A stretch of 64,000 bases of DNA from Basidiobolus meristosporus CBS 931.73 (taxonomy: Eukaryota; Fungi; Basidiobolomycota): the NCBI GenBank assembly GCA_002104905.1, contig MCFE01000034.1:1-64000 (forward strand), in the 5' to 3' direction. The position numbers and the translations under genes are program-made. A model generated the notes under the pieces. It made no database searches, was not told the origin of the DNA, and saw nothing but the letters and a program-made list of their open reading frames with translations. The stretch's first letter is position 1. The number at the start of each line of letters is the position of its first letter. Shown piece by piece: positions 20,244-59,100 of this stretch.

Positions 20244-23200
20244 TCATATCCAATCACAAATAATGGATTGACCAAGGGATTTACACACCGTTCCGCTGGC
20301 GCAATGGTTCTGGATCAGACGTCCATTACTACAAACGAAGAAGATTCGCGAGGTACCTGAATCAAAGCAAGTGTATCGCCCGTTGACGCAATCCCCACCG
20401 AAGGTGGGTTTCGCCAGTTTTTCGTCCCGTGTGACAGTGACTGTATGAATATTGTGCAGTGTGACTGTTTGGATGTTGGTTACCGAGACAACGACAGTAG
20501 CAGTAGCGCATTGGGGTGCGTATGTCGCTTCAGTGGAAGACAGAGGAGATTGAGAGCCCGTCACAGTTGGCTCGACAACGATAGTACGATCGATGACCGT
20601 GCGTATATTACCATTTCCATCGGTCACAGTAGTTACGTGCGCAAGCGTCTCAGCAGATGAGGCCAGAGGGGATTGAACACCAGCAGATTTGGAGATCTCA
20701 GTTGACTTCTCGTTGTGAGACGACTCCGTTGACTTGTGCTCTGACTCAGAGTGGCTAGGCTTGACAGATGAATTGACTTGGCTTGCAGTGTGAGCGTATA
20801 TGGTGGATGATGCAATGTGTCTCTCTCTATGAGCCTTTTCCGTTGTCTTATCGTGATCAGCAGATTTCGAGCGCTCAGTTGGCTTCTCGGAATGAGACAA
20901 CTCATTAGAACTGTAGGTAGGTATCAAATGCTCTGTAGGTTGTTCGGAGTGAGACGACTGCTTGGGTCTATGTTCTGACTCCGAGTGGGCAGGTTTCACC
21001 AAAGATCTAGTATGGCTTGCAATATGATGGTGCTCAGTGGACTTCTCAGATTGCGAGTGTTCCTTGTGTCTGCGCACTGACTCCGAGTGGGTAGGCTTCA
21101 CAGACGACTCAATATGGCTCTCACTGTGTACATGCTCAGTGGGCTTCTCTGAGTGTGCCGATTCATCGGAATTGATGTGAACTGACTTCGAAGTTGACTT
21201 GCCATGAGCTGCAGATTTGGAGTGCTTCCCGGGCTTATCAGAATGAGATGTTTCCTTGGGTCTGTGTTCCGAATCCGAGTAAGTATGTTTTGTTGTGGAG
21301 TCTACATGGGTTTGCGAGTGTGCATGTTCTGTAGGATTCTCAGAATGGGATGGTACTTCGGAACCAGTGTGGGCTGACTTCGAAATTGTCATTGCATGTT
21401 CGGCAGATTTCGAATGCCCTATGGACTTCTCAGAGTGGGACGACTGCCTGGGTCTGCGTTCTGACTCTGAGTGAGTAGGCTTCACAGATGGAGCAATGCG
21501 GCTTTCACTGTGAGCCTTTGCTGTTGTCATATCGTGGCCAGCAGATTTGGAGTGCTCAGTTGGCTTCGCAGAAGGAGACGATTCATTAGAACTGCGGGTA
21601 GATTTCAAATGCTCAGTAGACTGTTCGGGGTGAGACGAATCCTTTGGACTGTGCTCTGACTCTGACTGTGTAGGCTTCACAGATGAGTTAACATGACTCT
21701 CACTGTGGGTGTGTTCGGTGGGCTTTTCGGAATGCAATGATTTTTCGGAGTCGGTGTGGGTTGGCTTCGAAGTAGTCTTTTCGTGTTCCACAGATTTTGA
21801 GTGCTCAGTTGACTTCTCAAGGTGTGAAGACCTCTTAGGTCTCTGTTCTGACTCTGAGTGAGTAGGCTTCACCAAGGATTCGGTATGGGCAGAATTCAAT
21901 GAGTACCCAGTTTCGGTGTGTACTGCCTTCGAAATTGACTTGTTATTAGAAGAATTGGAGTGCTCACCGGGCTTCACGCGGTGAGACGACTCCTTGGGTT
22001 TCCCAGAGGATTCAACATGTTGTTCACTGTGTATGCTCTCAGTAGGCTTGTCTGACTCGTTGTGGACTGGCCTTGAGTGAGATGACTCCTTAGATCTACC
22101 TTCTGACTTCGGGTGTGTAGGCTTCATGATGGATTCAGAGTGGCTCTCACTATGAGCGTGTTCTGTGGGCATCTCAGTTTGCGATGACTTTTTGGACTTG
22201 CTGTGAGCTATCTTGGAGTGCTCAGTAGACTTCTCGGAGTGAGATGACTCCTTAGGTCTATATCCCGACTCCGAGCGAGTAGGATTCACAAATGATTCTA
22301 CATGGCTCTCACTGTGGACATGTTCCGTGGGCTTTTTAAGATGTGATGAGCTATCCGATTCAGTATGCACTGGCTCTGAAATAGACTTGATCGCAGCCGA
22401 TTTGGAGTGCTTGACTGACTTCTTTGAGTGAGATGATTCCATATAACTGTGCACTGGCTCCGAGTGTGTAGGCTTCACAGATGGGTTAGAGCGATATTCA
22501 CTGTGAACGTGTTCCGTGGGCTTCTCAGAATGCGACGGCTTATCGGATTCTGAGTGCTCTGGCTCCGATGATGTCTTATCATGATCAACAGCTTTCGAAT
22601 GCTCGCTGGGCTTCACAGAGTGAGACGACTTCTTTGCTTTGCGTTCTGGCTCTGTGGGAGTAGGTTGCACTGACGATTCAATGTGACTCTTACTGTGAAT
22701 CTTTTGTGTTGTATTATTCTGATCGGCGGATTTCGAGCGTTCAGTTGACTTCTCAGAATGCACGCTTCTACTGTCAACATGTTCTGTGGGCTTCACGGGC
22801 TCTAAGGAATTTTCGGATTTTGCGGATTTCGCAGACTGCGAGGATTTCATGAACTCAGAGTGGGCCGACTTCGAAGCAAAGTTATGACTTTCAGAATTGG
22901 AGTGCTTGGTGGGCTTCTCAGCATGGGACGACTCCCAATGACTGTACGCTGACTTTGAGCGGGTAGACTTCACTGATGAGTTAACATGGCTCTCACTGTG
23001 GACACTTTCGGTAGGCGTCCCGTAATGCGATGATATTTTGGACACAGTGTGGTCTGGCTCCGAAGTAGTTATCTCGTGTTCAGCAGATTTGGAGTGTTCA
23101 GTTGACTTCTCCGTATGAGTCGACTTTTCAAATCTGTGAGTAGATATCAAATGCTCAGAAGATTGTTCAGAGTGAGACGACTGCCTGGGTCTGCGTTCTG

Positions 23201-26200
23201 ACTCCGAGTGAGCAGGCTTCACAGACGATTCAATGCGGCTCCCACTGTGGACATGTTCAGTGGGCTTCTCTGAATGCGCTGATTTGTCCGAGTTGGTGTG
23301 AACTGACTTCGAAGGAGACTTGCCATGATCGGCAGATTTGGAGTGCTCGTTGTGCTGATCAGAATGAGATGATTCCCTGGGTACGTGCTCTGATTCTGAA
23401 TGAGTAGGCTTCACAGACGATTCTACATGGCTCTCACTGTGGACACGTTCAGTGGGCTTCTCTGAATGCGCTGATTTGATCGAATCGGTGTGGACTGTCT
23501 TCGAAGTTGGCATGTTATGATCAGCAGATTTGGAGTGCTCACTGGGCTCATCAGAATGCGATGTCTCTTTAGGTCTGTGCTCTGACTCCGAGTGGGTAGG
23601 CTTCGTGAATGAATCTACATGAGTTTGCGAGTGAATGTGCTCATTAGACTTATCAGAATGTGACGGTTCCTTGGGTTTGTGAACTGACTGCGAGTGAGTA
23701 GGCCTCACAGATGTGACAGCATGGCTTTGACTTTGAACGTGTTCGGTGGTCTCCTCAGAGTGAGATGAGTCTTCATGTTTGTGCACTGACTCCGAGTGAG
23801 TAGGCTTCACAGTCGAGTCAATATGGTTATCACTGTGGACATGTTCAGTGGGCTTCTCAGAATGAGCTGATTTTTCGAAATCGGTGTGAACTGACTTCAA
23901 AGTGGACTTGTATTGAGCAGCGGATTTGGAGTGCTCTCCGGACTTATCAGAATGAGATGTTTCCTTGCGTCTATGAACTGATTCCGAATGGGAAGGCTTC
24001 ACAGATGAGTCTACATGGGTTTTCGAGTGACTGTGTTCTGACTCCGAGCGGGTAGGCTTCACAGAGGAGTTAACGTGACTCTTACTGTAGACATGTTCTG
24101 TGGGCTTCTCAGAATGCGATAATTTATCGGACTCACTATGGGCTGACTTCGGTGTTGTTGTCTCGTGTTCAGCAGATGTAGAATAATCAGTGGACTTCTC
24201 CGAGTGAGACGGCTTCTTGGGTCCGTATTCTGACTCTGAACGAGTAGGCTTTGCTGTTGAGTCAACATGACTTTCACTGTGGGTATGTTCTGTTGGCTTC
24301 TCCGAATGTGATGATTTTACAGACTTAGTGTGGGCTGGCTTTAAAGTTGACATCTCGTGCGCAGCAGATTTCGTATGCTCACTGGAATTTTCGGAATGAG
24401 ACGACTTTACGGGTCTGCGTTCTGACTGTGTAGGCTTCACAGATGAGTGAACACGGCTCTCATGGTGGCTGCTTCCGGTAGGCTTCCCGGAATGCATTGA
24501 TGTTTCGGACACAGTGTGGGCCGGCTCCGAAGTAGTCATCTCGTGTTCAGTAGATTTCGAATGCTCAGTGGACTTCTCGGAGTAAGACGACTCCTTGGGA
24601 CCATGCTCTGACTCTGAGTGAGTAGTCTTCACAGATGATCCAATGTGAGTCTTACTGTGAGCCTTTTCCGTTGTCTTATCGTGATCAGCAGATTTCGAGC
24701 GCTCAGTTGGCTTCTCGGAATGAGACAACTCATTAGAACTGTAGGTAGGTATCAAATGCTCTGTAGGTTGTTCGGAGTGAGACGACTGCTTGGGTCTATG
24801 TTCTGACTCCGAGTGGGCAGGTTTCACCAAAGATCTAGTATGGCTTGCAATATGATGGTGCTCAGTGGACTTCTCAGATTGCGAGTGTTCCTTGTGTCTG
24901 CGCACTGACTCCGAGTGGGTAGGCTTCACAGACGACTCAATATGGCTCTCACTGTGTACATGCTCAGTGGGCTTCTCTGAGTGTGCCGATTCATCGGAAT
25001 TGATGTGAACTGACTTCGAAGTTGACTTGCCATGAGCTGCAGATTTGGAGTGCTTCCCGGGCTTATCAGAATGAGATGTTTCCTTGGGTCTGTGTTCCGA
25101 ATCCGAGTAAGTATGTTTTGTTGTGGAGTCTACATGGGTTTGCGAGTGTGCATGTTCTGTAGGATTCTCAGAATGGGATGGTACTTCGGAACCAGTGTGG
25201 GCTGACTTCGAAATTGTCATTGCATGTTCGGCAGATTTCGAATGCCCTATGGACTTCTCAGAGTGGGACGACTGCCTGGGTCTGCGTTCTGACTCTGAGT
25301 GAGTAGGCTTCACAGATGGAGCAATGCGGCTTTCACTGTGAGCCTTTGCTGTTGTCATATCGTGGCCAGCAGATTTGGAGTGCTCAGTTGGCTTCGCAGA
25401 AGGAGACGATTCATTAGAACTGCGGGTAGATTTCAAATGCTCAGTAGACTGTTCGGGGTGAGACGAATCCTTTGGACTGTGCTCTGACTCTGACTGTGTA
25501 GGCTTCACAGATGAGTTAACATGACTCTCACTGTGGGTGTGTTCGGTGGGCTTTTCGGAATGCAATGATTTTTCGGAGTCGGTGTGGGTTGGCTTCGAAG
25601 TAGTCTTTTCGTGTTCCACAGATTTTGAGTGCTCAGTTGACTTCTCAAGGTGCGAAGACTTTTGAGGTATATTGTGTGACTCGGATTGAGTAGGATTGCT
25701 CAAGGATTCAGTATGGCGGTCAATATGAGCGTGCTCAGTGGACTTCTTCGAGTGTGAGGATTCAGTGAGTCTGTGCTCAGACTTTGTGTGAATAGAATTC
25801 ACAGATGATTTGACATGGCTCTCACTGTGGACATGTTCAGTAGGCATTTCAGAATTAGCGGACTTGGGGAGAACCGACCTCGAAGTAAGCCTGCTATGAT
25901 CAGCAGATTTGGAGTGCTCCCTAGGCTTATCGGAATAAGATGATTCCCTTGGTCTGTGCTCTGACTCCGAATGAGTAGGCTTCATTGACGATTCTACATG
26001 GCTCTCACTGTGGACACGTTCTGTGGGCTTCTCTGAATGCACTGATTTGCTAGAATTGGTGTGAACTGACTTCGAAGTTGGCATATCATGATCGGTAGAT
26101 TTGGAGTGCTTGCTGAGCTTATGAGGAGATGATCCCCTGGTTCTGTGCACTGACTCCGAGTGAGTAGACTTCACAGATGAGTCTATATGTGTCTGTGAAT

Positions 26201-29200
26201 GAATGTGCTCAGTTGACTTCTCCGAGTGGGAGTGTACCTTGTGTCCGTGCTCCGACTCCGAATGAGTAGGCATCATTGATGATTCAATATGGCTATCACT
26301 GCGCACATGTTTAGCGGGCCTCGCTGAATGTGCTGATTTGTCATCACTGGTGTGAACTGACTTCGAAGTTGACTTGTCATGCTCAGCGGATTTGGAGTGT
26401 TCCCTGGGCCTGTCAGAACGAGATGAATCCTGGTGTCTGTGAACTGACTCCGAGTGGGAAGGCTTCATAGATGAGTCAATGTGGGTTTGCGAGTTTATAT
26501 GTTTTGACTCCGAGCGAGTAGGCTTCACAGAGGAGTTAACATGGCTCTCGCTGTGGAGACGTTCTGTGGGCTTCTCAGAATGAGCCGATTTATCGGAGGT
26601 GGTGTGAACCAATTTCGAAGTTGACTGGGCATTATCAGCAGATTTGGAGTGCTCACTGTGCTTATGAGAATGGGATGATTCCCTGGGCCTGTGCTCTGAT
26701 TCCGGGTGAGTAGACTTCGTGGATGAGTCTATATGGGTCAGTGAACGAATGTGCTCAGTGGACCTCTCCAAGTGAGAGTGTTCCTTGTGTCCGTGCTCTG
26801 ACTCCGAATGAGTAGGCTTCACGGACGATTCAATATGGCTATCACTGTGGACATATTTCGTGGGCTTCTCAGAATGTGCTGAGTTATCGGAAGTGGTGTG
26901 AGCCAATTTCGATGTTGACTGGACATGATCAGCAGATTCGGAGTGCACGCTGTGTTTATCAGAACGATATGAGTCCTTGTGTCTGTGTACTGACTCCGAG
27001 TGAGTAGGCTTCACAGATGAGTCCCAATGGGCTTGTGTGGGAGTACGCCTTGACTCCGAGTGGGTAGGCTTCGCTGAGGAGTCAACATGGCTCTCACTGC
27101 GCACATGTTTAGTGGGACTCGCTGGATGCGCTGATTTGCCATCACTGGTGTGAACTGACTTCGAAGTTGACTTGTCATGATCAGCGGATTTGGAGTGTTC
27201 CCTGGGCCTGTCAGAACGAGATGAATCCTGGTGTCTGTGAACTGACTCCGAGTGGGAAGGCTTCACAGATGGGCTAACACGGCTTTGCGAGTTTATGTGT
27301 TTTGACTCCGAGCGAGTAGGCTTCACAGAGGAGTTAACATGGCTCTCGCTGTGGAGACGTTCTGTGGGCTTCTCAGAATGAGCCGATTTATCGGAGGTGG
27401 TGTGAACCAATTTCGAAGTTGACTGGACATTATCAGCAGATTTGGAGTGCTCACTGTGCTTATGAGAATGGGATGATTCCCTGGGCCTGTGCTCTGACTC
27501 CGGGTGAGTAGACTTCGTGGATGAGTCTATATGGGTCAGTGAACGAATGTGCTCAGTGGACCTCTCCAAGTGAGAGTGTTCCTTGTGTCCATGTTTCGAC
27601 TCCGAATGAGTAGGCTCAGAATGCGCTGAGTTATCGGAAGTGGTGTGAACCAATATCGAAGCTGACTTGACATGATCAGCAGATTTCGAGTGTTCGTTGG
27701 GTTTATCAGAGTAAGATGATTCTCTGTGTCTGTGCTCTGATTCCGAATCAGTAGGCTTCACAGTCGATTTTACATGGCTCTCACTGTGAATATGTTGAGT
27801 AGGCTTCTCAGAATGCACTGATTTATGTGAATTGGTGTGAACTGACTTCGAAGTTGACTTGTCTCGGTCAGCAGATTTAGAGTGTTCGTTGGGTTTATGA
27901 GAAAGAGATGATTCCCAGTGTTTGTGCTCTGACTCCGAGTGGGTAGGCTTCACCGACGATTCACTGTGGCTCTCACTGCGCACATGTCCAGTAGGCTTCT
28001 CTGAATGCGCTGATCTGCTAGAATACGAATGAACTCCATTCGAAGTTGACTTTCTGTGATCAGCAGATTTTGAGTGCTCCCCGGGCTTATCTGAGTGCGA
28101 GTGTTCCTGATGTCTGTGCACTGACTCGGAGTGAATAGACTTCACAGATGTTTCAATATGGCTCTCACTGTGGATACGTTCAGTAGGCTTCTCTGAGTGC
28201 GCTGATTTGATAGAATTGGTGTGAACCAATTTCGATGTTGACCTGACGTGATCAGCAGATTTGGAGGTCTCGCTGTGCTTATCAGAGTGGGATAATTCCC
28301 TGTGTCTGGGCTCTGACGCCGAATGAGTAGGCTTCCCAGACGATGCAGTATGGCTATTACTGTGGACATGTTCAGTACGCTTCTCTGATTGCGCTGATTT
28401 GCCAGAATCGGTGTGGATCGGCTTGGAAGTTGTCTTTGTGTGTTCAGGTGATATCTCAGACTGAGACGACTCTATATGCCTTTGCTTTGACTCTGAGTGC
28501 CATGGTTCCTTGGACCTATGTTCTGACTCCGAGTGCGCAGATTTCACAGAGGATCCATCGTGGCTTACGCTGGGAATATGTTCTGTGGGCATCTTAGAGT
28601 GCGGCGGCTCCTTGGATTTGTGCTCCGCCTCCGAGTGTGTAGGCTTTACCAAGGATTCAGTATGGCTTGTATCATGAATGTGCTGAGTGGACTTCTCAGA
28701 GCGAGACGATTCCTTGGGTCTGTACTCTGACTCCGAGTGAGTACGCATCACAGATGAGTCAACATGGCTCTCACTATGGGCGCGTGCTGATGGCTTCTCC
28801 GAATGCCGTGACATTTCGGAGTTAGTGTGGGCTGATTTCGAAGTTATCATCTCGTGTTCCGCAGATTTTGAGTGCTCAGTTGACTTCTCAAGGTGTGAAG
28901 ACCACTTAGATCTGTGTTCCGACTCTGCGTGGGTAGGCTTTACAGACGATCCAATATGGCTATCGCTGTGGACATGTTTCGTGGGCCTCTCTGAATGCGC
29001 TGATTTGATAGAATTGGTGTGAACTGACTTCGAAGGAGACTTGCCATGATCGGCAGATTTGGAGTGCTCGTTGTGCTGATCAGAATGAGATGATTCCCTG
29101 GGTACGTGCTCTGATTCCGAATGAGTAGGCTTCACAGACGATTCTTCGTGGCTCTCACTGTGGACACGTTCAGTGGGCTTCTCTGAATGCGCTGATTTGA

Positions 29201-35200: not shown

Positions 35201-38200
35201 TGACGTGTTCAGCAGATTTCGAGTGCTCAGTGGATTTCTCAGAGTGAGACAATTCCTTCGACTTGTGCTCGGATTCCGAGTGTGTAGGCTTCACAAATGA
35301 GCTAATATGACTTCCACTGTGAGTGTGTTCGGTGGGCTTCGCAGTTTTATCTGCATTTTCGGACTCACTGTGGACGGACTTTGAAGTTGAACTATCGTGA
35401 TGTAGAGATTGGGAGCGTCCTGTTGATTTGTTAGTATGTGACATTTCCTTAGATTGGCTTACCGACGCTGAGTGTTGAGCCTTCACAGATGATTTAACGT
35501 GGCTTTCAATGGGAGTTCGACCGGTAGGGTTTTCTGAAGGTGATAATTTCTGAGACTGACTGTGCACTGGCTTCGTAGTTGTCTTGTCATGGCCTTGAGA
35601 TTTATAGTGTTCAGTTGGCTTCTCGGAGTGGGACAACGATGAGTCAATATGGCTTTCATTATGAATATGCTCGGTGGACTTCTCAGAGTGCGATGATTTC
35701 TTGTGTCTGTGTTCTGACTCCGAAGGAGTATGTCTCACAGATGAGGCAACATTGCTTTCACTTTGAACATGTTCGGTTGTCTTCTTAGAGTGCGACGATT
35801 CCTTCGGTATGCGCTCTGACTCCGAGTGAGTAGGCTTCACAGACGATTCAATGTGGCTCTCACTGTGAATATGCTCCGTAGACTCAGTGTGGGCTGGCTT
35901 GGAAGTTGTCTTCTTATGTTCAGAAGATTGTGAATGCTCAGAATGAGATGATATCCCATGGCTGTGTTCTGACTTCAAATGAGTAGGTTTCACAGACGAG
36001 CCAAGGTGACTTTTACTGTGGGCACGTTCGGTGGGCTTCTCCGTATACGATGATTTCTGAGACTCCCTGTGGATCGGCTTGGAAGTTGTCTTTGTGTGTT
36101 CAGGTGATATCTCAGACTGAGACGACTCTATATGCCTTTGCTTTGACTCTGAGTGCCATGGTTCCTTGGACCTATGTTCTGACTCTGAGTGCGCAGATTT
36201 CACAGAGGATCCATCGTGGCTTACGCTGGGAATATGTTCTGTGGGCTTCTTAGAGTGCGGCGGCTCCTTGGATTTGTGCTCCGCCTCCGAGTGTGTAGGC
36301 TTTACCAAGGATTCAGTATGGCTTGTATCATGAATGTACTGAGTGGACTTCTCAGAGCGAGACGATTCCTTGGGTCTGTACTCTGACTCCGAGTGAGTAC
36401 GCATCACAGATGAGTCAACATGGCTCTCACTATGGGCGCGTGCTGATGGCTTCACCGAATGCCGTGACATTTCGGAGTTAGTGTGGGCTGATTTCGAAGT
36501 TATCATCTCGTGTTCCGCAGATTTTGAGTGCTCAGTTGACTTCTCAAGGTGTGAAGACCACTTAGATCTGTGTTCCGACTCTGCGTGGGTAGGCTTTACA
36601 GACGATCCAATATGGCTATCGCTGTGGACATGTTTCGTGGGCCTCTCTGAATGCGCTGATTTGATAGAATTGGTGTGGACTGACTTCGAAGGAGACTTGC
36701 CATGATCGGCAGATTTGGAGTGCTCGTTGTGCTGATCAGAATGAGATGATTCCCTGGGTACGTGCTCTGATTCCGAATGAGTAGGCTTCACAGACGATTC
36801 TTCGTGGCTCTCACTGTGAACACGTTCAGTGGGCTTCTCTGAATGCGCTGATTTGCCAGAATCGGTGTGGACTGTCTTCGAAGTTGGTATGTTATGATCA
36901 GCAGATTTAGAGTGCCTGCTGGGCTTATCAGAGTGGGAAGATTCCCTGTGTCTGTGCTCTGACCCCGAATGAGTAGGCTTCATTGACGATTCTTCGTGGC
37001 TCTCACTGTGAATACGTTCAGTGGGCTTCTCTGAATGCGCCGCTGATTTGTCAGAATCGGTGTGGACTGTCTTCGAAGTTGGCATGTTATGATTAGCAGA
37101 TTTAGAGTGCCTGCTGTGCTTATCAGAGTGAGATGATTCCCTGGGTCTGTGCACTGACTCCGAATGAGTAGGCTTTACTGATGAGTTAATGTTGCTCTTA
37201 CTGTGAATGTGCTCCGTTGGCTTCTCAGAATGCGATGATTTGTAGGACTCGGTGTGAACTGGCTTCGAAGTAGACTTACCGTGGTCGTCAGACTTGGTGT
37301 GCTCACTGGGCTTCTCAGAGTGTGACTTCGAAGACGCCTTATCGTGATCAGGAGATTTAGTGTGCTCGGGGGTCTTCTCAGTGTCAGAAGACTCCATAGA
37401 TCTGTGCCCGGACTCCGAGTAAGTATGCTTCACAGATGAGGTAGCGTGGCTTTCACTTTGAACGTGTTCAGGGGTCTTCCTAGAATGCAACGATGTTACG
37501 GACTTGGTGCGAGCTGGCTGCGAAGCTGTCATTTCGTGATCAGCAGATTTCGAGTGCGCATTGGACTTTTCATAGTGAGAGGTTTCTTTGGACCTGTATT
37601 CTGACTCCGAGTGTGAAGGCTTCACAGATGAGACAACATGGTTTTCGCTTTGAACGTGTTCTGTTGGCTTCGCAGGCTGCGATGATATTCCATGCTCAGT
37701 GTGTACTGGCTTCGAGGTTACTTTATGGTGGGCAGCAGACTTTGAGTGCTCAGTGGGCTTGTCCAGATGCGAAGACTCCTTAGATCTGTGCTCTGACTCC
37801 GAATGAATAGGCTTCACAGATGAGTCAACGTGGCTTTCAGTACGAGTGTGGCCGGTAGGCTTCTCGGATGACAACAATTTACTTGACTCAGGATGCGTTG
37901 TCTTCAGCGACGACTTATCGTGATGTTGGGACTGAGGGTGCTTGGTTGGCACATCAGATTGAGACGGCTCTTTGTGTCTATGTATCGACCCCGAGTGAGT
38001 AGGCTTGAGAGGAGAATCAACGTGATTTTCACTGCGAATGTGGTTTATGGATTTTTCAGATGGTGATACCGTTCCGGACGCCTTGTGGACTGGCTTCGAC
38101 GATGGGCTATCGTGATCTGAAGTTTCGTGGCGCCTAGTGGGCTTTTCAGAGTGAGACGACTGCTTCACCGATGATTCAGTATGACTTTCATTATGAATGT

Positions 38201-41200
38201 ACTTGCTGGGCTTCTCAGAGTGCGACGATTCTCTGGGTCTGTGACCTGATTCTGTGTGAGTAGGCTTCGCAGTTGACTCCATGTGGCTTTCACTGTGAGC
38301 GTGTTCGGTGGGATGCGCTGATTTGACGGACTCCGCGTGGACTGACTTCGAAGTTGCTTTATTGTGATCAGCAGATTTGGATTGCCCTGCGGGCATCCGA
38401 GGTGAGGAACAAGACTTTGACTCGCTATGAACCGGCTTCGAAGAAGGCCTGTCATGACCCTGCGGCTCCGAGTGCTTAGTTGGCTTTCCTGAGTGAGAGT
38501 ATTCCTTGGATCTGTGTACCGATTCCGAGTGACTAGGCTTCGCAGTTGACTCCGTGTGGCTGTGGCTGTGAGCGTGTTCGGTGGGATGTGCTGATTTGAC
38601 GGACTCCGCGTGAACTGACTTCGAAGTTGCTTTATTGTGATCAGCAGATTTGGATTGCCCTGCGGGCATCCGAGGTGAGGAACACGACTTTGACTCGCTA
38701 TGAACCGGCTTCGAAGAAGGCCTGTCATGACCCTGTGGCTCCGAGTGCTTGGTGGGCCTTTCTGAGTGAGAGTATTCCTTGGATCTGTGTACCGATTCCG
38801 AGTGACTAGACTTCGCAGTTGACCCCATATGGCTTTCACTGTTAGCGTGTTCGGTGGGATGTGCTGATTTGACGGACTCCGTGTGAACTGACTGCGAAGT
38901 TGCTTTATTGTGATCAGCAGATTTGGATTGCCCTGCGGGCATCCGAGGTGAGGAACACGACTTTGACTCGCTATGAACTGGCTTCGAAGAAGGCCTGTCA
39001 TGACCCTGTGGCTCCGAGTGCTTGGTGGGCTTTTCTGAGTGAGAGTATTCCTTGGATCTGTGTACCGATTCCGAGTGACTAGGCTTCGCAGTTGACTCCG
39101 TGTGGCTTTCACTGTTAGCGTGTTCGGTGGGATGCGCTGATTTGGCGGACTCCGCGTGGACTGACTTCGAAGTTGCTTTATTGTGATCAGCAGATTTGGA
39201 TTGCCCTGCGGGCATCCGAGGTGAGGAACACGACTTTGACTCGCTATGAACTGGCTTCGAAGAAGGCTTGTCATGACCCTGTGGCTCCGAGTGCTTAGTT
39301 GGCTTTTCTGAGTGAGAGTATTCCTTGGATCTGTGTACCGATTCCGAGTGACTAGGCTTCGCAGTTGACTCCATGTGGCTGTGGCTGTGGCTGTGAGCGT
39401 GTTCGGTGGTATGTGCTGATTTGACGGGCTCCGTGTGAACTGACTTCGAAGTTGCTTTATTGTGATCAGCAGATTTGGATTGCCCTGCGGGCATCCGAGG
39501 TGAGGAACACGACTTTGACTCGCTATGAACTGGCTTCGAAGAAGGCTTGTCGTGACCCTGTGGCTCCGAGTGCTTGGTGGGCCTTTCTGAGTGAGAGTAT
39601 TCCTTGGATCTGTGTACCGATTCCGAGTGACTAGGCTTCGCAGTTGACTCCATGTGGCTGTGGCTGTGGCTGTGAGCTTGTTCGGTGGGATGTGCTGATT
39701 TGACGGACTCCGTGTGGACTGACTTCGAAGTTGCTTTATTGTGATCAGCAGATTTGGGTTGCCCTGCGGGCATCCGAGGTGAGGAACAAGACTTTGACTC
39801 GCTATGAACCGGCTTCAAAGAAGGCTTGTCATGACCCTGTGGCTCCGAGTGCTTGGTGGGCTTTTCTGAGTGAGAGTATTCCTTGGATCTGTGTACCGGT
39901 TCCGAGTGACTAGACTTCGCAGTTGACTCCATATGGCTTTCACTGTTAGCGTGTTCGGTGGGATGCGCTGATTTGACGGACTCCGTGTGGACTGACTTCG
40001 AAGTTGCTTTATTGTGATCAACAGATTTGGATTGCCCTGCGGGCATCCGAGGTGAGGAACACGACTTTGACTCGCTATGAACCGGCTTCGAAGAAGGCCT
40101 GTCATGACCCTGTGGCTCCGAGTGCTTGGTGGGCCTTTCTGAGTGAGAGTATTCCTTGGATCTGTGTACCGATTCCGAGTGACTAGGCTTCGCAGTTGAC
40201 TCCATGTGGCTGTGGCTGTGGCTGTGAGCGTGTTCGGTGGGATGTGCTGATTTGACGGACTCCGTGTGAACTGACTGCGAAGTTGCTTTATTGTGATCAG
40301 CAGATTTGGATTGCCCTGCGGGCATCCGAGGTGAGGAACAAGACTTTGACTCGCTATGAACTGGCTTCGAAGAAGGCCTGTCATGACCCTGTGGCTCCGA
40401 GTGCTTAGTTGGCTTTTCTGAGTGAGAGTATTCCTTGGATCTGTGTACTGATTCTGTGTGAATAGGCTTCTTAAATGAGTCAATATGGGTATTACTGTGA
40501 GTTCGATCGTGGGGCATCTCTGATCGAGATGATTTGGTGGTTGGTGTATATGAAGGTTTTGAGGTAATTGGTGCTTCTGAAGCAGACATGACTGATTTCC
40601 CTTTCGGTGGAGCTCCAGCACAAGCAGGGCCGTTCGTAGTCATTAGGCAGACTTGACTCCCACTACAACTGTATTTTTTTATGACCCCGTTAATGCAAGC
40701 ATTAACAACTCCTGTTCTACGTTCGTCTTCGCATGTGGCTGCTTGACACTCTGGCTTCTTAGGAATCTGTGGCGTAAACTTGCTTTCATGAGGGACAGAT
40801 TTACTTACAGTTAATGTTCCTGGTGGAGAAGTAGGAGTGTTAGATCTATCGCTACTTCTTACAAGAGTGGAAGTAGTGGAGTCTGATTTATCGCTACGTC
40901 TTTTAAGGGTAGAAGTAGCCGAGTTAGACTTATCGCTGCTTCTTTTAAGGGTAGAAGTAACCGAGCTAGATTTATCACTACTTGTCGGGATTGAACTAAC
41001 TGTGTCGGTTTTATGGCTACCTCTTTTAAGTGAAGTAGATGTGCCAGGTTGATCGCCGCTTCCCATCAAGGTAGAAGAATGTGTACTTGTTGTACTAACG
41101 GTTGAATGTGAGGTTTGGAGGTCAGCAATTTGCAAAATGCACTCGATTCCCTCCCACTGACGGCTCCAGCTTACCCAATCTATGCATATCGCTGTTCCTT

Positions 41201-42329
41201 GGCAGTTGAACTGAACCATCTCGCCATTGATGCATTTCTTGAATTGTCTACTCTGACCTGGGTCAACACATTGATATTCGGCCGGGCAGTTGTTCTTTTT
41301 TGAGACAGTAACCACAGCTGTTGTTTCGGCCACCATATGAGTAACCACCTTGGTTTGGAGTACAACGCTTTCCACGATATCTAAGGTTGATGATGCAGGT
41401 TCCACGGAAGGCGAATTTACAATGGGATTCTCGACTTTCATCTCAACACATCCTTGCTTCTCTTTACATATCGTTCCGGTGGGGCACATCGTCGTTTGCC
41501 ATTGACCATTTATACATAACGCAAGTGCGTCTCTACCAGAACATGAGAACTCGAATTCTTTCGGACATGGGCCACTCAGTGGTTTGTAGTTTCCTTCGGA
41601 ACCGGGAAGTATACACCCTAGGTTCTCTTTACATATTTGATTTCCGCTACATGTCTCGATTGTCGGTTCGCCAAAACTCGGGCAGTATTGCATTGTGTGT
41701 TTGTCTATGCAAGACCAAGGTACATCTGGATTGCATTTATTTTGAGTGTTAGGTGCGTGAATGGGTTTGCACCCTGGCTGACCATTGCTCATTTGGCAGT
41801 TATACCCGCTTGAACAGGCTACTTCGGCGACATTCCCCTTGTAGCAAGTTAGATATCGATCCTTGCTTAGGCATCTGCCTTTGTAAGTGGACGGGCTGCA
41901 TCCCATCGTTACGACTGCCTGGGATGTCTCCGCGGACTGGTGGACAGAAAGGGAGGTAACAGCAATCATGCCAGTTGTAAGTGAGGAGGCTTTCATTGGT
42001 AATTCGCATTGGGCCCGACCGGCACCGTCAGAAACGCAAACATACTGTTGTCTGACTGGTTTGTATTGGGTTGGGCAAGCGTATACCACCCAATAGCCGT
42101 TCATGCACATTTTGTACTGGTGATTGTCGTTGGGCATGCAATAGACCTGGCCTTCGTTACATCGCTGGGCTAATGTCGTAACGGCGATTCCTTGAGATAG
42201 CGTCGAGGTCAGCCCGTGAACGGTATTGATCGAACCTGGTTGAAATGTTGCTGTTTCTGGTAGTAGGGGAGACCCCCAAACAGGTGCTAACAGAGCAAAG
42301 TAAGCTGCCAACACAGCGTTTACCTTCAT
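20244..42329 (-). CDS. Giant secreted His/Ser-rich repeat protein with terminal 6-Cys CBM19-like modules (gene A), 7361 aa, intronless
   Basis: One uninterrupted 22,086-bp ORF. Signal peptide MKVNAVLAAYFALLAPVWG; six N-terminal C..C..CxxG..C..C..C modules; about 6,600 aa of H/S/K/E/T/P repeats; a C-terminal module CVNGRYTC...FVCSNG...CASGTVC...IICDWI. No TM or GPI signal. The CBM19 assignment is by Cys pattern only. Confidence 0.9.
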   Translation of the reverse strand: MKVNAVLAAYFALLAPVWGSPLLPETATFQPGSINTVHGLTSTLSQGIAVTTLAQRCNEGQVYCMPNDNHQYKMCMNGYWVVYACPTQYKPVRQQYVCVSDGAGRAQCELPMKASSLTTGMIAVTSLSVHQSAETSQAVVTMGCSPSTYKGRCLSKDRYLTCYKGNVAEVACSSGYNCQMSNGQPGCKPIHAPNTQNKCNPDVPWSCIDKHTMQYCPSFGEPTIETCSGNQICKENLGCILPGSEGNYKPLSGPCPKEFEFSCSGRDALALCINGQWQTTMCPTGTICKEKQGCVEMKVENPIVNSPSVEPASSTLDIVESVVLQTKVVTHMVAETTAVVTVSKKNNCPAEYQCVDPGQSRQFKKCINGEMVQFNCQGTAICIDWVSWSRQWEGIECILQIADLQTSHSTVSTTSTHSSTLMGSGDQPGTSTSLKRGSHKTDTVSSIPTSSDKSSSVTSTLKRSSDKSNSATSTLKRRSDKSDSTTSTLVRSSDRSNTPTSPPGTLTVSKSVPHESKFTPQIPKKPECQAATCEDERRTGVVNACINGVIKKYSCSGSQVCLMTTNGPACAGAPPKGKSVMSASEAPITSKPSYTPTTKSSRSEMPHDRTHSNTHIDSFKKPIHTESVHRSKEYSHSEKPTKHSEPQGHDRPSSKPVHSESKSCSSPRMPAGQSKSADHNKATSQSVHTESVKSAHPTEHAHSHSHSHMESTAKPSHSESVHRSKEYSHSERPTKHSEPQGHDRPSSKPVHSESKSCSSPRMPAGQSKSVDHNKATSKSVHTESVKSAHPTEHANSESHMESTAKSSHSEPVHRSKEYSHSEKPTKHSEPQGHDKPSLKPVHSESKSCSSPRMPAGQPKSADHNKATSKSVHTESVKSAHPTEQAHSHSHSHMESTAKPSHSESVHRSKEYSHSERPTKHSEPQGHDKPSSKPVHSESKSCSSPRMPAGQSKSADHNKATSKSVHTEPVKSAHTTEHAHSHSHSHMESTAKPSHSESVHRSKEYSHSEKPTKHSEPQGHDKPSSKPVHSESKSCSSPRMPAGQSKSADHNKATSKSVHAESAKSAHPTEHANSESHTESTAKPSHSESVHRSKEYSHSEKPTKHSEPQGHDRPSSKPVHSESKSCSSPRMPAGQSKSADHNKATSQSVHTESVKSAHPTEHANSESHMGSTAKSSHSESVHRSKEYSHSERPTKHSEPQGHDRPSSKPVHSESKSCSSPRMPAGQSKSADHNKATSKSVHAESVKSAHPTEHAHSHSHTESTAKPSHSESVHRSKEYSHSGKPTKHSEPQGHDRPSSKPVHSESKSCSSPRMPAGQSKSADHNKATSKSVHAESVKSAHPTEHAHSESHMESTAKPTHTESGHRPRESSHSEKPSKYIHNESHTESSVKQSSHSEKPTRRHETSDHDSPSSKPVHKASGTVSPSEKSINHIRSENHVDSPLKPTHSGSIHRHKEPSQSDVPTKHPQSQHHDKSSLKTTHPESSKLLSSEKPTGHTRTESHVDSSVKPIHSESEHRSKESSHLDKPTEHSKSAAHHKVTSKPVHTEHGISSQPAKPTEHVQSENHVVSSVKPSHSESEYRSKETSHYEKSNAHSKSADHEMTASQPARTKSVTSLHSRKTPEHVQSESHATSSVKHTYSESGHRSMESSDTEKTPEHTKSPDHDKASSKSHSEKPSEHTKSDDHGKSTSKPVHTESYKSSHSEKPTEHIHSKSNINSSVKPTHSESVHRPRESSHSDKHSRHSKSANHNMPTSKTVHTDSDKSAAHSEKPTERIHSESHEESSMKPTHSGSEHRHRESSHSDKPSRHSKSADHNIPTSKTVHTDSGKSAHSEKPTERVHSESHEESSVKPTHSESEHVPRESSHSDQHNEHSKSADHGKSPSKSVHTNSIKSAHSERPTKHVHSDSHIGSSVKPTHAESEHRSKWSSHLEKSTEHSKSAEHEMITSKSAHTNSEMSRHSVKPSARAHSESHVDSSVMRTHSESEYRPKESSRSEKSTQYIHDTSHTESLVKPTHSEAEHKSKEPPHSKKPTEHIPSVSHDGSSVKSAHSESEHRSKEPWHSESKQRHIESSQSEISPEHTKTTSKPIHRESQKSSYTEKPTERAHSKSHLGSSVKPTHLKSEHSHGISSHSEHSQSSEHKKTTSKPAHTESTEHIHSESHIESSVKPTHSESERIPKESSHSKKTTEHVQSESNVASSVRHTPSESEHRHKKSSHSEKSTEHIHNESHIDSSLSHSEKPTEHYKSQGHDKTTTKPVHSQSQKLSPSENPTGRTPIESHVKSSVKAQHSASVSQSKEMSHTNKSTGRSQSLHHDSSTSKSVHSESENADKTAKPTEHTHSGSHISSFVKPTHSESEHKSKELSHSEKSTEHSKSAEHVKTTSKPDYTKSEKSSHTEKPTEHIHTESHINSSVRPSYSNSDHRPKEPSHYENSTKYSKSAEHEKTTSKPAHTGSDKSSHSEKPTERAHSDSHVDSSVKPIHSESEHRSKESSHLDKPTEHSKSAAHHKVTSKPVHTEPEKSSRSKKTTENVRSQSHVDSTVKASHTESEHRPRESSHYEKPTDHSKSAKHEMPTLRPDRTKSEKSTHSAKPTERAHSDRHPESSVRSKHSKSEQGHRESSYSEKPTKHIKSPGSSDSQKSIEPLKSTYHGESTSMSMHTRPEKSYKSAKHEKITSKPAHTESDKSPHSEKSTGRAHSYSHIYSSVKPIHSESEHRSKKSSHLEKSTEHSKSADHHKATSKPTYSESQKPSRSEESTEHAHSESHISSFVKSTHSESEHRARGSSHSNNPSDHSKSAADDRSTPKSVPTNSDNSAHSAKPTEHVHSDSNIESSVKSTHSESEHRHMESSHSDKPSRHSKSADHGMPTSKLVHTTSDNSAHSEPTHSESEHGRKEHSHLERSTEHIRSLTHIDSSTKSTHPESEHRPRESSHSHKHSEHSKSADNVQSTSKLVHTTSDKSAHSETPTERLHSESHVNSSVKSTRSESKHINSQTHIDSSMKPSHSESVHRHQDSSRSDRPREHSKSADHDKSTSKSVHTSDGKSAHPASPTKHVRSESHVDSSAKPTHSESRHTPTQAHWDSSVKPTHSESVHRHKDSYHSDKHSVHSESADHVQSTSKLAHTTSDNSAHSEKPTKYVHSDSHIESSVKPTHSESEHRHKEHSHSERSTEHVHSQTHMDSSMKPTHSESEHRARGSSHSNNPSDHSKSAADDRSTPKSVPTNSDNSAHSAKPTEHVHGDSHIESSVKSTHSESEHRHMESSHSDKPSRHSKSADHGMPTSKSVHTDSDKSAAHSEKPTERVHSESHEESSMKPTHSESVRRHKEHSQSDKPSRHYKSADHDMPTSNTVHTNSGKSAQSEKPTERAHSESHVESSVEPTHSESEHRHVESSHSGKHSEHYKSTDHSMPTSRSVHTDSNKPAHSEKPTERVRSNSHNASLVKSTHSESEPRHRESSHSEKPSKHPKSADHNTTTSKSVRTYSSRSARSEKPTEHVHSESHEESSMKPTHVDSEHRPRESSHSDKNGEHSKSADHRKSTSKSVHTDSDKSAAHSEKPTERIHSDSHEESSMKPTHSGSEHVPRESSHSDKPSRHSKSADHDMPTSKSVHTDSDKSAAHSEKPTERVHSESHEESSMKPTHSESVRRHKESSHSDKNGEHSKSADHNIPTSKLVHTNSGKSAQSEKPTERAHSESHVESSVEPTHSESEHRHMESSHSDKNGEHSKSADHGKSTSKSVHTDSNKPAHSEKPTERVRSNSHIASSVKSTHSESEPRHRESSHSDKPSRHSKSADHDMPTSKSVHTDSGKSAQSEKPTERAHSESHVESSVEPTHSESEHRHVESSHSGKHSEHYKSTDHSMPTSRSVHTDSNKPAHSEKPTERVRSNSHNASFVKSTHSESEPRHRESSHSDKPSKHPKSVDHNTTTSKSVRTYSSRSARSEKPTEHVHSESHEESSMKPTHVDSEHRPRESSHSDKNGEHSKSADHRKSTSKSVHTDSDKSAAHSEKPTERIHSESHEESSMKPTYSGSEHRPRESSHSDKPSRHSKSADHDMPTSKSVHTDSDKSAAHSEKPTKRVHSESHEESSMKPTHSESVRRHKESSHSDKNGEHSKSADHNIPTSKSVHTNSGKSAQSENPTERAHSESHVESSVEPTHSESEHRHVESSHSDKNGEHSKSADHGKSTSKSIHTDSNKPAHSEKPTERVRSNSHIASSVKSTHSESEPRHRESSHSDKPSKHPKSADHNTTTSKSVRTYSSSSARSEKPTEHVHSESHVESSMKPTNVDSEHRPRESFHSDEHSEHSKSADHGKSTSKSVHTDSDKSATHSEKPTERIHSESHEESSMKPTHSGSEHRPRESSHSDKPSRHSKSADHDIPTSKTVHTDSIKSAHSEKPTERVHSESHEESSVKPTHSESEHVPRESSHSDQHNEHSKSADHGKSPSKSVHTNSIKSAHSERPTKHVHSDSHIGSSVKPTHAESEHRSKWSSHLEKSTEHSKSAEHEMITSKSAHTNSEMSRHSEKPSARAHSESHVDSSVMRTHSESEYRPKESSRSEKSTQHIHDTSHTESLVKPTHSEAEHKSKEPPHSKMPTEHIPSVSHDGSSVKSAHSESEHRSKEPWHSESKQRHIESSQSEISPEHTKTTSKPIHTDSGKSAQSEKRTEHVHSNSHTASSGKPTHSASEPRHRELSHSDKHSETSKSADHVRSTSKLVHTNSIKSAHSEKPTERIHSESHIETSVKSIHSESVHRHQEHSHSDKPGEHSKSADHRKSTSNGVHSYSSRSAHSEKPTGHVRSESHSESSVKPTHSESEHKHWESSLSHKPNEHSKSADRDKSTSKSVHTNSHKSVHSEKPTQHIHSESHVKSTVKPTDSESEHRHRESSYSDKPNEHSKSADHVKSASILVHTTSDNSAHSEPTHSESKHGHKEHSHLERSTEHIRSLTHIDSSTKSTHPESEHRPRESSHSHKHSEHSKSADNVQSTSKLVHTTSDKSAHSEKPTERLHSESHVNSSVKPTRSESKHINSQSRVSPSVKPSHSESVHRHQDSSRSDRPREHSKSADHDKSTSKSVHTSDGKSAHPASPTKHVRSESHVDSSAKPTHSESRRTPTQAHWDSSVKPTHSESVHRHKDSYRSDKHSVHSESADHVQSTSKLAHTTSDNSAHSEKPTKYVHSDSHIESSVKPTHSESEHGHKEHSHLERSTEHIRSLTHIDSSTKSTHPESEHRPRESSHSHKHSEHSKSADNAQSTSKLVHTTSDKSAHSEKPTERLHSESHVNSSVKPTRSESKHINSQTHIDSSMKPSHSESVHRHQDSSRSDRPREHSKSAEHDKSTSKSVHTSDDKSAHSARPAKHVRSDSHIESSMMPTHSESEHGHKVHSHSEKSTEHIHSQTHIDSSVKSTHSESVHRTRGSSPHKLSKHSKSTDHDMPTSKSVHTNSSKSVHSEKPTERVHSESHVESSMKPTHSESEHRPRESSYSDKPREHSKSADHSRLTSRSVLPKSANSEMPTEHVHSESHVKSSVNSIHTKSEHRLTESSHSKKSTEHAHIDRHTESLSNPTQSESHNIPQKSSHLEKSTEHSKSVEHEKTTSKPTHTDSEKSLHSEKPTEHTHSESHVNSSVKPTQSESEHSPKDSSHPEQSTEHLKSTRSSNESSPSAKPTEHSKSAGHDMTTAKAHSESRIAPSVKPTHSESERRPRQSSHSEKSIGHSKSAEHAMTISKSAHTGSEVPSHSENPTEHAHSQTHVDSTTKHTYSDSEHRPKETSHSDKPGKHSKSAAHGKSTSKSVHINSDESAHSEKPTEHVHSESHIESSVKPTHSESVRRHKEHSQSEKSTEHHHIASHTRSLVKPAHSESEHRPKQSSHSEQPTEHLIPTYSSNELSHSEKPTERSKSADHDKTTEKAHSKTHIGSSVKTTHSESEHGPKESSYSEKSTEHSKSTEHEMTTSEPAHTVSETSMHSGKPTGSSHHESRVHSSVKPTQSERRPVKSSHSENSSEHTKSAAHEMSTLKPAHTKSVKSSHSEKPTEHTHSESHVDSTAKPTRSESEYGPKKPSHSEKSTDYSTSAEHETTTPKSAHSESDKLSHSEKPTEHVYSKSHVNSSVKPTRSESEHSHSKTHVDSSVKPSHSESVHRRKETSHSDKSGEHSKSAAQYKSTLKSVHTDFEKSAHSEKPTEHVHSDNHIDSTVKPTHSESVHKHEDSSHSEETTEHVQSQSHAVTSVRPTHSQSVHKPKEPSHSDKSNEHIHSQTHVDSFTKPTHSESEHRPKETSHSDEPSEHSKSADHNMPTSKTVHTDSIKSAHSEKPTERVHSESHVESSVKPTHSESEHVPRESSHSDQHNEHSKSADHGKSPSKSVHTNSDKSAHSEKPTEHVHSGSRIESSVKPAHSESERRPRQSSHSEQSSEHLISTHRFEKSTHTEKSTEHSKSAEHEITTSEPDHTVSKISSHYGTPTESVHSESHVNSSVKSTRSKSAYSHWESSHAEKPTKHSNSESHNFASKSAHSEFMKSSQSAKSAKSENSLEPVKPTEHVDSRSVHSEKSTERSKSADQNNTTQKIHSKSHIESSVQPTPTEPERKAKKSSHSVKPSEHSKAVDHDKTSSEPEHSESDKPSHSEKPTEHVHSEYRSNPSVKPTHSEPVHSYMESSHSKKSVKHSKSAAIKSISEPVHTESDSSSHLKKPTEHVHSESHVESFVNPTRSESGYRPKESSHSEKSTEHSKIAHSKSKKSSQTEMPTEHAHSESHSESIMKPTHPKSEGRSKESSHSRPVHNESDKPTESIHSEQHVESSGKPKESSHRVKPGEHSNSSNNKSISKAVHTETGYSLNSAHTESLVKPTHSESEQRPKRSSHLEKSTEHSKSVEHEKTTSKPTHTDSEKSLHSEKPTEHTHSESHVNSSVKPTQSESEHSPKDSSHPEQSTEHLKSTRSSNESSPSAKPTEHSKSAGHDMTTAKAHSESRIAPSVKPTHSESERRPRQSSHSEKSIGHSKSAEHAMTISKSAHTGSEVPSHSENPTEHAHSQTHVDSTTKHTYSDSEHRPKETSHSDKPGKHSKSAAHGKSTSKSVHINSDESAHSEKPTEHVHSESHIESSVKPTHSESVRRHKEHSQSEKSTEHHHIASHTRSLVKPAHSESEHRPKQSSHSEQPTEHLIPTYSSNELSHSEKPTERSKSADHDKTTEKAHRERHIASSTIYAHTASQVNSSVKPSHSESEHKSTESSHNEKSTEISKSAGVQSPLASSAETLAHVTTVTDGNGNIRTVIDRTIVVEPTVTGSQSPLSSTEATYAPQCATATVVVSVTNIQTVTLHNIHTVTVTRDEKLAKPTFGGDCVNGRYTCFDSGTSRIFFVCSNGRLIQNHCASGTVCKSLGQSIICDWI
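20680..38260 (-). repeat. Degenerate coding tandem array, basic unit ~64-65 aa (~192-195 bp), with higher-order duplications
   Basis: Recurrent SHSEKPTEHVHSESHVESSVKPTHSESEHRPRES-SHSDKPSEHSKSADHDKSTSKSVHTDSDKSA-type units. Recurrent shadow ORFs at offsets of 966, 1350, 3828 and 7656 bp. Confidence 0.92.
38260..40460 (-). repeat. Eight near-identical 91-93 aa (273/279 bp) coding repeats, each with one Cys
   Basis: The motif SKSCSSPRMPAG occurs 8 times. Length variation comes from a (TGTGGC)n hexamer encoding HSHS runs. Confidence 0.92.
40840..41030 (-). repeat. Short 14-aa (42-bp) coding repeats containing KR dibasic sites
   Basis: SDKSSSVTSTLKRS / SDKSNSATSTLKRR / SDKSDSTTSTLVRS, plus an upstream TSLKRG. 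Confidence 0.7.
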
Positions 42330-42369
42330 AATTCGACAGCCCTTCGATGGCTCTAGACTGCTGCCCAGC

Positions 42370-42377
42370 TATTTATA
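42370..42377 (-). promoter_or_regulatory. TATA box of gene A
   Basis: TATAAATA on the minus strand ~41 bp upstream of the ATG. The same motif and spacing occur in gene B. Confidence 0.7.
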
Positions 42378-59061: not shown

Positions 59062-59100
59062 TTTTACGAGGTCCTTTAATGATTTCAGACTACTGGCCAT

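Follow-up and report, generated by a model that had tools for sequence, protein, structure and literature searches.

The window analysed here, i.e., a stretch of 64,000 nucleotides (nt) from contig MCFE01000034.1 of the Basidiobolus meristosporus CBS 931.73 assembly GCA_002104905.1, carries on its minus strand one uninterrupted gene for a giant protein of 7,361 amino acids (aa). It is a real, selectively maintained gene that was found here only in Basidiobolus, and it encodes a secreted protein without an anchor. Its parts are of known kinds, namely a cysteine module of predicted CBM19/CBM14-type fold and a tandem-repeat linker, while their combination was not found described. This combination is a catalytically inert fungal protein of 811 kDa in which six modules plus one more are joined by a histidine-rich polyampholyte of 6,650 residues. 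By analogy, it may be read as a chitin-bound scaffold of the extracellular matrix, a fungal counterpart of the peritrophins and intestinal mucins of insects, and a probability of about 0.55 is given to this reading.

The coding sequence and its signal peptide were placed as follows.

20244 to 42329, minus strand: complete intron-free coding sequence, 7,361 codons plus TGA (open reading frame list and frame scan)
42273 to 42329, minus strand: signal peptide, residues 1-19, MKVNAVLAAYFALLAPVWG (hydrophobicity; cleavage site judged by eye)

The intronless open reading frame (ORF) of 7,361 codons is exactly as the original prediction gave it, with no stop in the coding frame and between 183 and 653 stops in each of the other five frames. 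The tandem-repeat periods found in it by Tandem Repeats Finder (TRF), 102, 192, 252, 273 and 294 nt, are all multiples of three. The ORF product consists of Ser (23.7%), His (12.6%), Glu (10.0%), Lys (9.5%), Thr (8.1%) and Pro (6.1%), among other residues, and the 924 histidines counted agree with the order of 1,000 that had been estimated. For the mature product, a mass of 811 kDa and an isoelectric point of 7.9 were calculated. The only hydrophobic stretch in the 7,361 aa (Kyte-Doolittle, window 19, score above 1.4) is at residues 5-24 and is signal-like; an N-terminal hydrophobic segment is present in all homologs. The chain ends in ...SIICDWI, three residues past its last cysteine, and because no hydrophobic window lies there, it has neither a transmembrane span nor a glycosylphosphatidylinositol (GPI) tail, which bears out the earlier view of a secreted, unanchored protein. 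GPI anchoring of the Als, Flo or Hyr/Iff type was rejected for want of a C-terminal hydrophobic GPI-addition signal, and PIR linkage was rejected because the DGQ[IVL]Q repeat is absent from the whole protein. Polymerisation in the manner of gel-forming mucins was rejected as well, as no VWD, C8, TIL or cystine-knot domain is present, and a Pfam scan of the complete protein returned CBM_19 as the sole family. There are 51 cysteines in total: 42 in seven modules of six, eight placed one per unit of a 91-aa repeat, and Cys7274. The nine outside the modules had been missed in the original prediction.

The seven modules lie where they had been proposed, six within residues 50-574 and one within residues 7308-7361, so that their distribution is asymmetric, with six at one end and one at the other.

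41997 to 42173, minus strand: M1, residues 53-111 (Pfam CBM_14 14.9 bits, CBM_19 13.8 bits, both sub-threshold)
41760 to 41912, minus strand: M2, residues 140-190 (cysteine pattern; no Pfam match alone)
41601 to 41747, minus strand: M3, residues 195-243 (cysteine pattern; no Pfam match alone)
41439 to 41579, minus strand: M4, residues 251-297 (passes the Pfam CBM_19 threshold)
41130 to 41300, minus strand: M5, residues 344-400 (best conserved module across the family)
40767 to 41126, minus strand: residues 402-521, linker from M5 to M6, rich in Ser and Thr (its three dibasic TSTLKR motifs are candidate Kex2 sites)
40611 to 40760, minus strand: M6, residues 524-573, directly before the array (cysteine pattern)
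20247 to 20402, minus strand: M7, C-terminal, residues 7310-7361 (AlphaFold2; Pfam CBM_14 17.9 bits, CBM_19 16.3 bits, both sub-threshold)

A conserved motif, INTVxGLTSxLSxGxAVTTLA, stands just before M1. The Pfam gathering scores are 20.1 bits for CBM_19 (PF03427) and 22.1 bits for CBM_14 (PF01607), two families that belong to one Pfam clan. Against CBM_19, M4 scored 26.5 bits alone, 20.9 bits within residues 1-3700 and 19.7 bits in a 700-aa query, which makes it a borderline member. The six other modules gave at most 16.3 bits or no match with CBM_19, and the CBM_14 threshold was reached by none of the seven, the best score being that of M7. When 33 modules of the family were aligned, five cysteine columns were invariant and the sixth was at least 90% conserved; at E ≤1, eight of the 33 match CBM_19 and seven match CBM_14. 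A search of PDB sequences with the profile of these 33 modules gave nothing significant (best E 0.38).

The fold of the modules is best seen in M7. Its AlphaFold2 model, for which the 33 modules served as the alignment, has five strands and a mean predicted local distance difference test (pLDDT) score of 90.2. Among the AlphaFold models of Swiss-Prot, it was matched to Rhizopus chitinases 1 and 2 with template-modelling (TM) scores of 0.77 and 0.74 (probability 1.0) and to residues 507-554 of yeast Cts1 with a TM score of 0.63 (probability 0.99-1.00), at 28-30% identity across these proteins. Almost all of the top AFDB matches of M7 are chitin-binding domains; further ones are those of acidic mammalian chitinase (AMCase), AA11 lytic polysaccharide monooxygenases (LPMOs), a chitin deacetylase, obstructor-E and CPG-2, with CPG-1 and CBD-1 also among the fold matches. 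In the PDB, the CBM14 domain of human chitotriosidase CHIT1 was matched with Z 5.9 and a root-mean-square deviation of 2.1 over 48 residues, followed by Der p 23 (5.5), Avr4 in complex with a chitin hexasaccharide (4.0), Blo t 12 (3.8) and tachycitin (2.7), although the Foldseek E-values of the PDB matches are about 0.5 and not significant by themselves. A language model placed the N-terminal 640 aa next to CBM19 proteins and to CBM14 mucins of arthropods. Profile (M4 above the Pfam threshold) and predicted fold (the M7 model) thus agree on the CBM19-type modules that had been proposed; assignment to the CBM19/CBM14 fold is well supported by modelling, and chitin binding is predicted from that fold.

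The linker between M5 and M6 may be processed. Its TSTLKR motifs, at residues 434-477 (40900-41030), account for half of the six KR dipeptides in the whole protein, and Kex2 cleavage there may release M1-M5. These motifs are not kept in the tandem paralog described below.

Between M6 and M7, nearly the whole chain is one repeat array.

20652 to 40595, minus strand: residues 579-7226, His-rich array of 119 units of 64 aa, some of them partial (repeat hidden Markov model (HMM) built from the protein itself)
38202 to 40470, minus strand: youngest part of the array, a unit of 273 nt (91 aa) in 8.2 copies that are 92% alike (TRF and alignment)
20409 to 20651, minus strand: residues 7227-7307, beta-type segment rich in Thr and Val, with Cys7274 as its one cysteine (akin to the 32-aa Thr/Val repeats in the paralog)

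At 6,648 residues, the array is about as long as the 6,600 residues first estimated. The HMM consensus unit, VKPTHSESEHRPKESSHSEKPTEHSKSADHDKSTSKSVHTESEKSAHSEKPTEHVHSESHVESS, has 64 aa with 10 His and 17 Ser; a consensus built by hand for the original prediction had the same number of histidines but 65 aa and 19 Ser. Each unit is a pair of half-units of about 32 aa that align at 17 of 32 positions, and four histidines are kept in register in each half. The array contains 910 His (13.7%), 941 Lys and Arg against 950 Asp and Glu, 33% Ser and Thr, and 9.5% hydrophobic residues, a composition from which it is almost certainly a disordered chain. With 0.36 nm per residue, the contour of the 6,648 residues is 2.4 micrometres when fully stretched. 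The micrometre length given earlier therefore holds as a contour, but as a reach it is an upper bound for what is probably a glycosylated coil. With standard pKa values, the net charge of the mature protein is about +24 at pH 8, +220 at pH 7, +460 at pH 6.5, +1,000 at pH 5 and +1,800 at pH 3.

The units are 60-85% identical to one another. A segment of 1,083 nt is present twice at 98% identity (20806-21888 and 24634-25716, 3.8 kb apart), and the regular central part of the array (27615-32804) has a higher-order periodicity of several units. Each 91-aa unit of the youngest sub-array carries one unpaired cysteine (SKSCSSPRMPAG), and the eight of them are candidates for intermolecular disulfides. 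A sequence search with a 500-aa piece of the array gave no match at E ≤0.001, and in a language-model atlas, the array was placed only with unrelated low-complexity clusters (recognition 687).

A chain of this kind could also serve metals in the first place. According to this alternative, the 910 histidines would store or scavenge Zn, Cu or Ni at the wall, e.g., for metal buffering in the gut or for supplying copper to LPMOs, and the modules would only retain the chain there. The 13.7% His content, the 86 HxH, 100 HxxxH and 39 HxHxxxH motifs of the array, its conserved histidine columns (5, 17, 24, 30, 39, 47, 56 and 60) and the AA11 LPMO domains among the fold matches are in its favour. However, the histidine columns are not clearly more conserved than the other columns, the window is without a metal transporter or an LPMO, and a chain of 6,650 residues would be a costly chelator. 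The zinc scavengers known from fungi, Pra1 among them, are small and soluble. Metal handling as the primary role is therefore considered distinctly unlikely.

Another possibility is that the protein coats the chitin of the wall and shields it against the acidic chitinases in the stomachs of amphibians, reptiles and insectivores, with the protonation of histidines at low pH swelling or tightening the coat. The model for this would be Avr4, a CBM14 lectin that shields Cladosporium fulvum from plant chitinases. Chitin-bound Avr4 is among the fold matches, as given above, and the charge calculated for pH 5 and pH 3 would suit such a coat. Basidiobolus inhabits vertebrate gastrointestinal tracts (PMC10964425). 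Yet the proposal rests wholly on analogy, and a protein of 811 kDa with seven modules covers little chitin per mass when compared with small lectins, which makes it improbable.

That the giant protein is encoded by a constrained gene can be judged from the substitution rates in its repeats, its flanks and its tandem paralog.

47503 to 59100, minus strand: tandem paralog, 3,866 codons (modules at both termini as in the giant gene, His-rich array shorter, Thr/Val-rich repeats in addition)
42370 to 42377, minus strand: TATAAATA, core-promoter (TATA) box, 48 nt 5' of the ATG (sequence and spacing comparison)
20159 to 20184, minus strand: two AATAAA motifs, 60 and 80 nt past the stop codon (motif scan)

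For 32 units of exactly 64 aa, the median nonsynonymous (dN) and synonymous (dS) divergences are 0.26 and 0.78, with a dN/dS of 0.34, and the ratio is below 1 in all 478 of 478 pairs. Between the gene and its paralog, dN/dS is 0.30 over 533 aligned N-terminal codons and 0.42 over 189 C-terminal codons, with a dS of about 0.8. Judged by these ratios (0.3-0.4), the repeat units and the tandem paralog are under purifying selection. The box TATAAATA recurs in the paralog (59101-59108) at the same distance from its MKV start and in the B. ranarum homologs L001, L004 and L006 at -49, so that in five family members of two species its spacing from the start codon is -47 to -49. The proximal 100 nt or so upstream are 79% identical between the two paralogs and have the motifs GATTAATCGAGA and GCTGATGACAAC in common, and no alignment was obtained beyond them. 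At the 3' side, about 350 nt of the flank are 75-83% identical to the flank of the paralog.

The assembly was compared with sequencing reads over positions 38000-43999, i.e., the first 4.3 kb of the gene. Contigs from Illumina-type DNA reads (runs X1 and X2, about 145x) showed zero differences from 40659-43999, and these identical contigs span the 5' 1.7 kb of the gene and 1.7 kb upstream. In the 273-nt sub-array, the short-read contigs fragment and the k-mer depth rises to about 6.6x that of single-copy sequence, which is compatible with 8 assembled copies at 92% identity.

It may still be supposed that this is not a working gene, the repeat-rich ORF being silent or in decay, or that assembly has inflated its length. 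The spliced transcript seen over the 5' end is antisense and not sense; the tandem paralog has an in-frame stop; the ORF was not called in the public annotation; and the comparison with reads is limited to the region just given. Against this stand a frame that stays free of stops across 22 kb, the low dN/dS in repeats, modules and C-terminus, and the conserved promoter geometry. Inflation by assembly is argued against by the units being 60-85% identical, which long reads assemble reliably, by the long duplicate being 98% rather than 100% identical, and by the depth of the young sub-array, which fits about 7-8 copies. The supposition is thus regarded as highly improbable.

None of the runs was listed as RNA, and the transcript evidence comes from run X3, which resembles cDNA (26.7 Mb of contigs, patchy depth, no mismatch to the window, and an adapter tail at the start of one contig). 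One X3 contig skips 41720-41799 with GT..AG on the plus strand, and X3 also covers 42227-43529, upstream of the ATG. Together these point to a transcript, spliced and antisense, that overlaps the promoter and the first part of the giant gene. The plus strand at 41179-43529 has no ORF longer than 121 aa. Since a library primed on poly(A) would under-sample sequence 18-20 kb from the 3' end, X3 speaks neither for nor against a sense mRNA of 22 kb. The public annotation has one 195-aa model within the ORF, P0002 (41095-41693, minus strand, locus L003), which starts from Met213, and no other gene within 10 kb on either side of that model. P0002 leaves the frame past residue 387 through a predicted intron of 74 nt (GTAAGC...TTAG on the gene strand). 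This intron was rejected as the main form because it would break a frame that is open and constrained for about 7,000 further codons. The call of a 195-aa fragment for a gene of 7,361 codons exposes a blind spot of annotation.

The promoter and X3 also bear on a proposal in which the protein is a spore adhesive on the beak of the capilliconidia. The N-terminal cluster would sit on the spore wall, and the C-terminal module and the His/Ser chain, cationic and hydrogen-bonding, would hold on to the chitinous cuticle of an insect or mite, the prey then being eaten by the vertebrate host. Adhesive material on capilliconidia has been described (PMC13370150). Modules of chitin-binding type at both ends and the lack of a wall anchor agree with an adhesive, a TATA-type promoter suits stage-regulated expression, and an array that is nearly uncovered in X3, presumably a vegetative culture, fits a stage-specific gene. 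The outer epicuticle of insects, however, is waxy and exposes little chitin, and this role is thought unlikely.

The original prediction named the gene as the best candidate for a new system in the window. The gene is not unique: a tandem paralog is present in the same window, a third member is on another contig of the same genome and four more are in B. ranarum. The paralog is 62-63% identical in aa to the giant gene at the N- and C-terminal modules (63% over the C-terminal 200 aa), and its His-rich array has 34 units. It contains a single in-frame TGA (58228-58230) inside the fourth cysteine module, which the public model P0001 avoids by a predicted GT..AG intron that removes part of this module. 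At 48125-51516 (minus strand), it has units of about 32 aa rich in Thr and Val (TVTESNGNVHTVIDRTVTIQPTVSVESGAR, about 23 copies) and units of 38 aa (114 nt), two extra repeat families for which no Pfam match was found. The giant gene has no array of either; it has one Thr/Val-rich unit only, just before M7.

When its first 640 residues were searched with HMMER against 1.84 billion representative proteins, eight hits were obtained, seven of them from Basidiobolus, and the family matches range from E 1e-155 to 1e-11. P0001 is the model of the paralog, P0002 is the model within the giant ORF, and P0007 is from the same genome but another contig. P0003, P0004, P0005 and P0006 are four members in GCA_040143965.1, the assembly of B. 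ranarum AG-B5 (bioRxiv 10.1101/2025.03.31.646025). P0008, the sole hit outside Basidiobolus and a weak one, was not counted as a relative: it is on a metagenome contig with archaeal-type neighbours and has nothing but the cysteine pattern in common with the family. The family is defined by a signal peptide, the INTVxGLTS...AVxTLA motif and the order M1-M2-M3-(M4)-M5, followed by an array rich in His, Ser, Thr, Lys and Glu. This layout is found in the giant gene, the paralog (P0001), P0007, P0003, P0004, P0005 and P0006. At four homolog loci, the frame is still open where the contig ends, in sequence that is rich in His, Ser, Thr, Lys and Glu and has 6.6-11.5% His, so that the His-richness is retained across diverged tails. 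Relatives turned up in just two assemblies, both of Basidiobolus, and all are truncated at contig ends. As short-read assemblies break at the array, the window holds the sole complete member that can be read here, and the family is practically invisible in protein databases. A sequence search with the last 190 aa gave no match. The absence of a described fungal family with this layout, as originally suspected, agrees with the literature and sequence searches, neither of which revealed one; the literature search for a described His-rich or CBM19 fungal protein, or for an expansion of CBM19 in Basidiobolus, found nothing relevant.

Some neighbouring genes were also recorded. At a distance of 2.2 kb from the B. 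ranarum member P0004 (locus L004), a small gene (77-532) encodes a chitin-binding domain of the CBM_5_12 type. In the window, an intron-free ORF of 847 aa for a chitin synthase (Chitin_synth_1, 1N and 2) lies at 3578-6121 on the minus strand, 14 kb from the giant gene. Between the two are a C2H2 zinc-finger ORF (8370-9458), an adenylosuccinate synthetase (12097-13206) and a frame-broken Copia element (15912-18211).

The favoured reading of a chitin-bound matrix scaffold would work as follows. The knots formed by the modules would bind chitin, as the same fold does in the chitinases of yeast and Rhizopus, human chitotriosidase, Avr4 and the peritrophins. The N-terminal cluster of six would provide a multivalent and non-covalent hold of high avidity on the chitin of the fungus's own wall or spore, and the single C-terminal module would engage a second fibril or foreign chitin. 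Ser/Thr-rich chains secreted by fungi are expected to be O-mannosylated, and the chain would form a brush or gel that holds water. How firmly it coheres could depend on pH or on Zn, Cu or Ni bridging the histidines, and also on disulfides through the eight unpaired cysteines near the base of the array. The protein would be part of an expanded family, in a fungus whose life cycle leads through the acidic, chitinase-rich guts of insect-eating animals.

Several observations weigh against the scaffold. Most of the modules remain under the Pfam thresholds, M4 alone passing that of CBM_19, and a fold of CBM14 type is also present in proteins with other ligands, e.g., the phlorotannin binder of Aplysia (8in3, Z 4.9). 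The AlphaFold2 model of the 391-aa N-terminal multi-module region (seven-row alignment) is of low confidence, with a pLDDT of 56; at this confidence, beta structure is predicted in all modules and in the Thr/Val-rich segments before M1, M2 and M5. The three LKR sites might split M1-M5 from the remainder, and the 74-nt intron, if used, may give a short isoform. Finally, X3 is patchy over the 5' end, its intron is on the opposite strand, and the first 2.4 kb of the array are hardly covered.

A more far-reaching version of the matrix is rather doubtful. In this version, the family would be wall or spore-coat material of Basidiobolus's own, in which giant, lectin-anchored, His-rich polyampholytes make a hydrogel gated by pH and metals. 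It would be neutral and relaxed outside the host. The acid of the gut would make it massively cationic, or metal ions would cross-link it, and there it would protect or remodel the chitin of the wall or turn adhesion on and off. If true, Basidiobolus would have invented a material convergent with the peritrophic matrix of insects as well as with the biomaterials that marine animals harden with histidine and metals. The explanations weighed here differ mainly in the structure and the stage that the protein serves.

Provided that the protein is made, few secreted proteins known from fungi would match it in size. It would also represent a class of wall or spore-surface material outside the current models of the fungal cell wall, namely a His-rich, charge-switchable chain of micrometre contour held non-covalently by multivalent lectin anchoring. 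Basidiobolus lives as a commensal in the guts of amphibians and reptiles and is occasionally pathogenic in humans, and the protein would then offer a molecular handle on its survival in the gut, the attachment of its spores to arthropods and its handling of metals.

Among known systems, the closest modules are the CBM19 domains of the Cts1 C-terminus and of Rhizopus chitinases 1 and 2, which likewise have about 45-55 aa, six cysteines and an all-beta structure and can be superposed (TM 0.63-0.77). Unlike these chitinases, the giant protein has no catalytic GH18 domain, and its modules are arranged as six plus one around a giant array. Avr4 of Cladosporium fulvum is also fungal, secreted and of CBM14-type fold, but it consists of one small domain and lacks a repeat array.

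In layout, the closest proteins are the peritrophins, the invertebrate intestinal mucins and nematode eggshell proteins (CPG-1/2 and CBD-1 of C. elegans), which are secreted without an anchor and combine six-cysteine modules with long Ser/Thr-rich linkers; this is a likeness of layout and not homology. A role in joining chitin fibrils into a matrix is commonly assigned to peritrophin-type proteins. They are, however, animal proteins with mucin-like Thr/Pro linkers, whereas the linker here is a His-rich polyampholyte, several times longer than in known peritrophin or mucin examples, and the CBM_14 scores are sub-threshold.

High His in tandem repeats is shared with Nvjp-1 of the Nereis jaw, the His-rich proteins of squid beak, mussel mfp-4, the histidine-rich glycoprotein of vertebrates and HRP2 of Plasmodium, and the cohesion of characterised His-rich structural or metal-binding proteins depends on pH or metals. 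No sequence relationship of the array to known His-rich proteins was found by sequence and language-model searches. These His-rich proteins of animals and Plasmodium are rich in Gly/Ala/His or Pro/His and far shorter, whereas here the histidines are accompanied by Ser, Lys, Glu, Thr and Pro with almost exactly balanced charges. The fungal adhesins and mucins (Als, Hyr/Iff, Flo11 and Msb2) are, like the giant protein, large and secreted, with Ser/Thr-rich tandem repeats and beta segments rich in Thr, Val and Ile. The giant protein differs from them in having no GPI, transmembrane or PIR attachment, and its attachment would instead use modules of lectin type.

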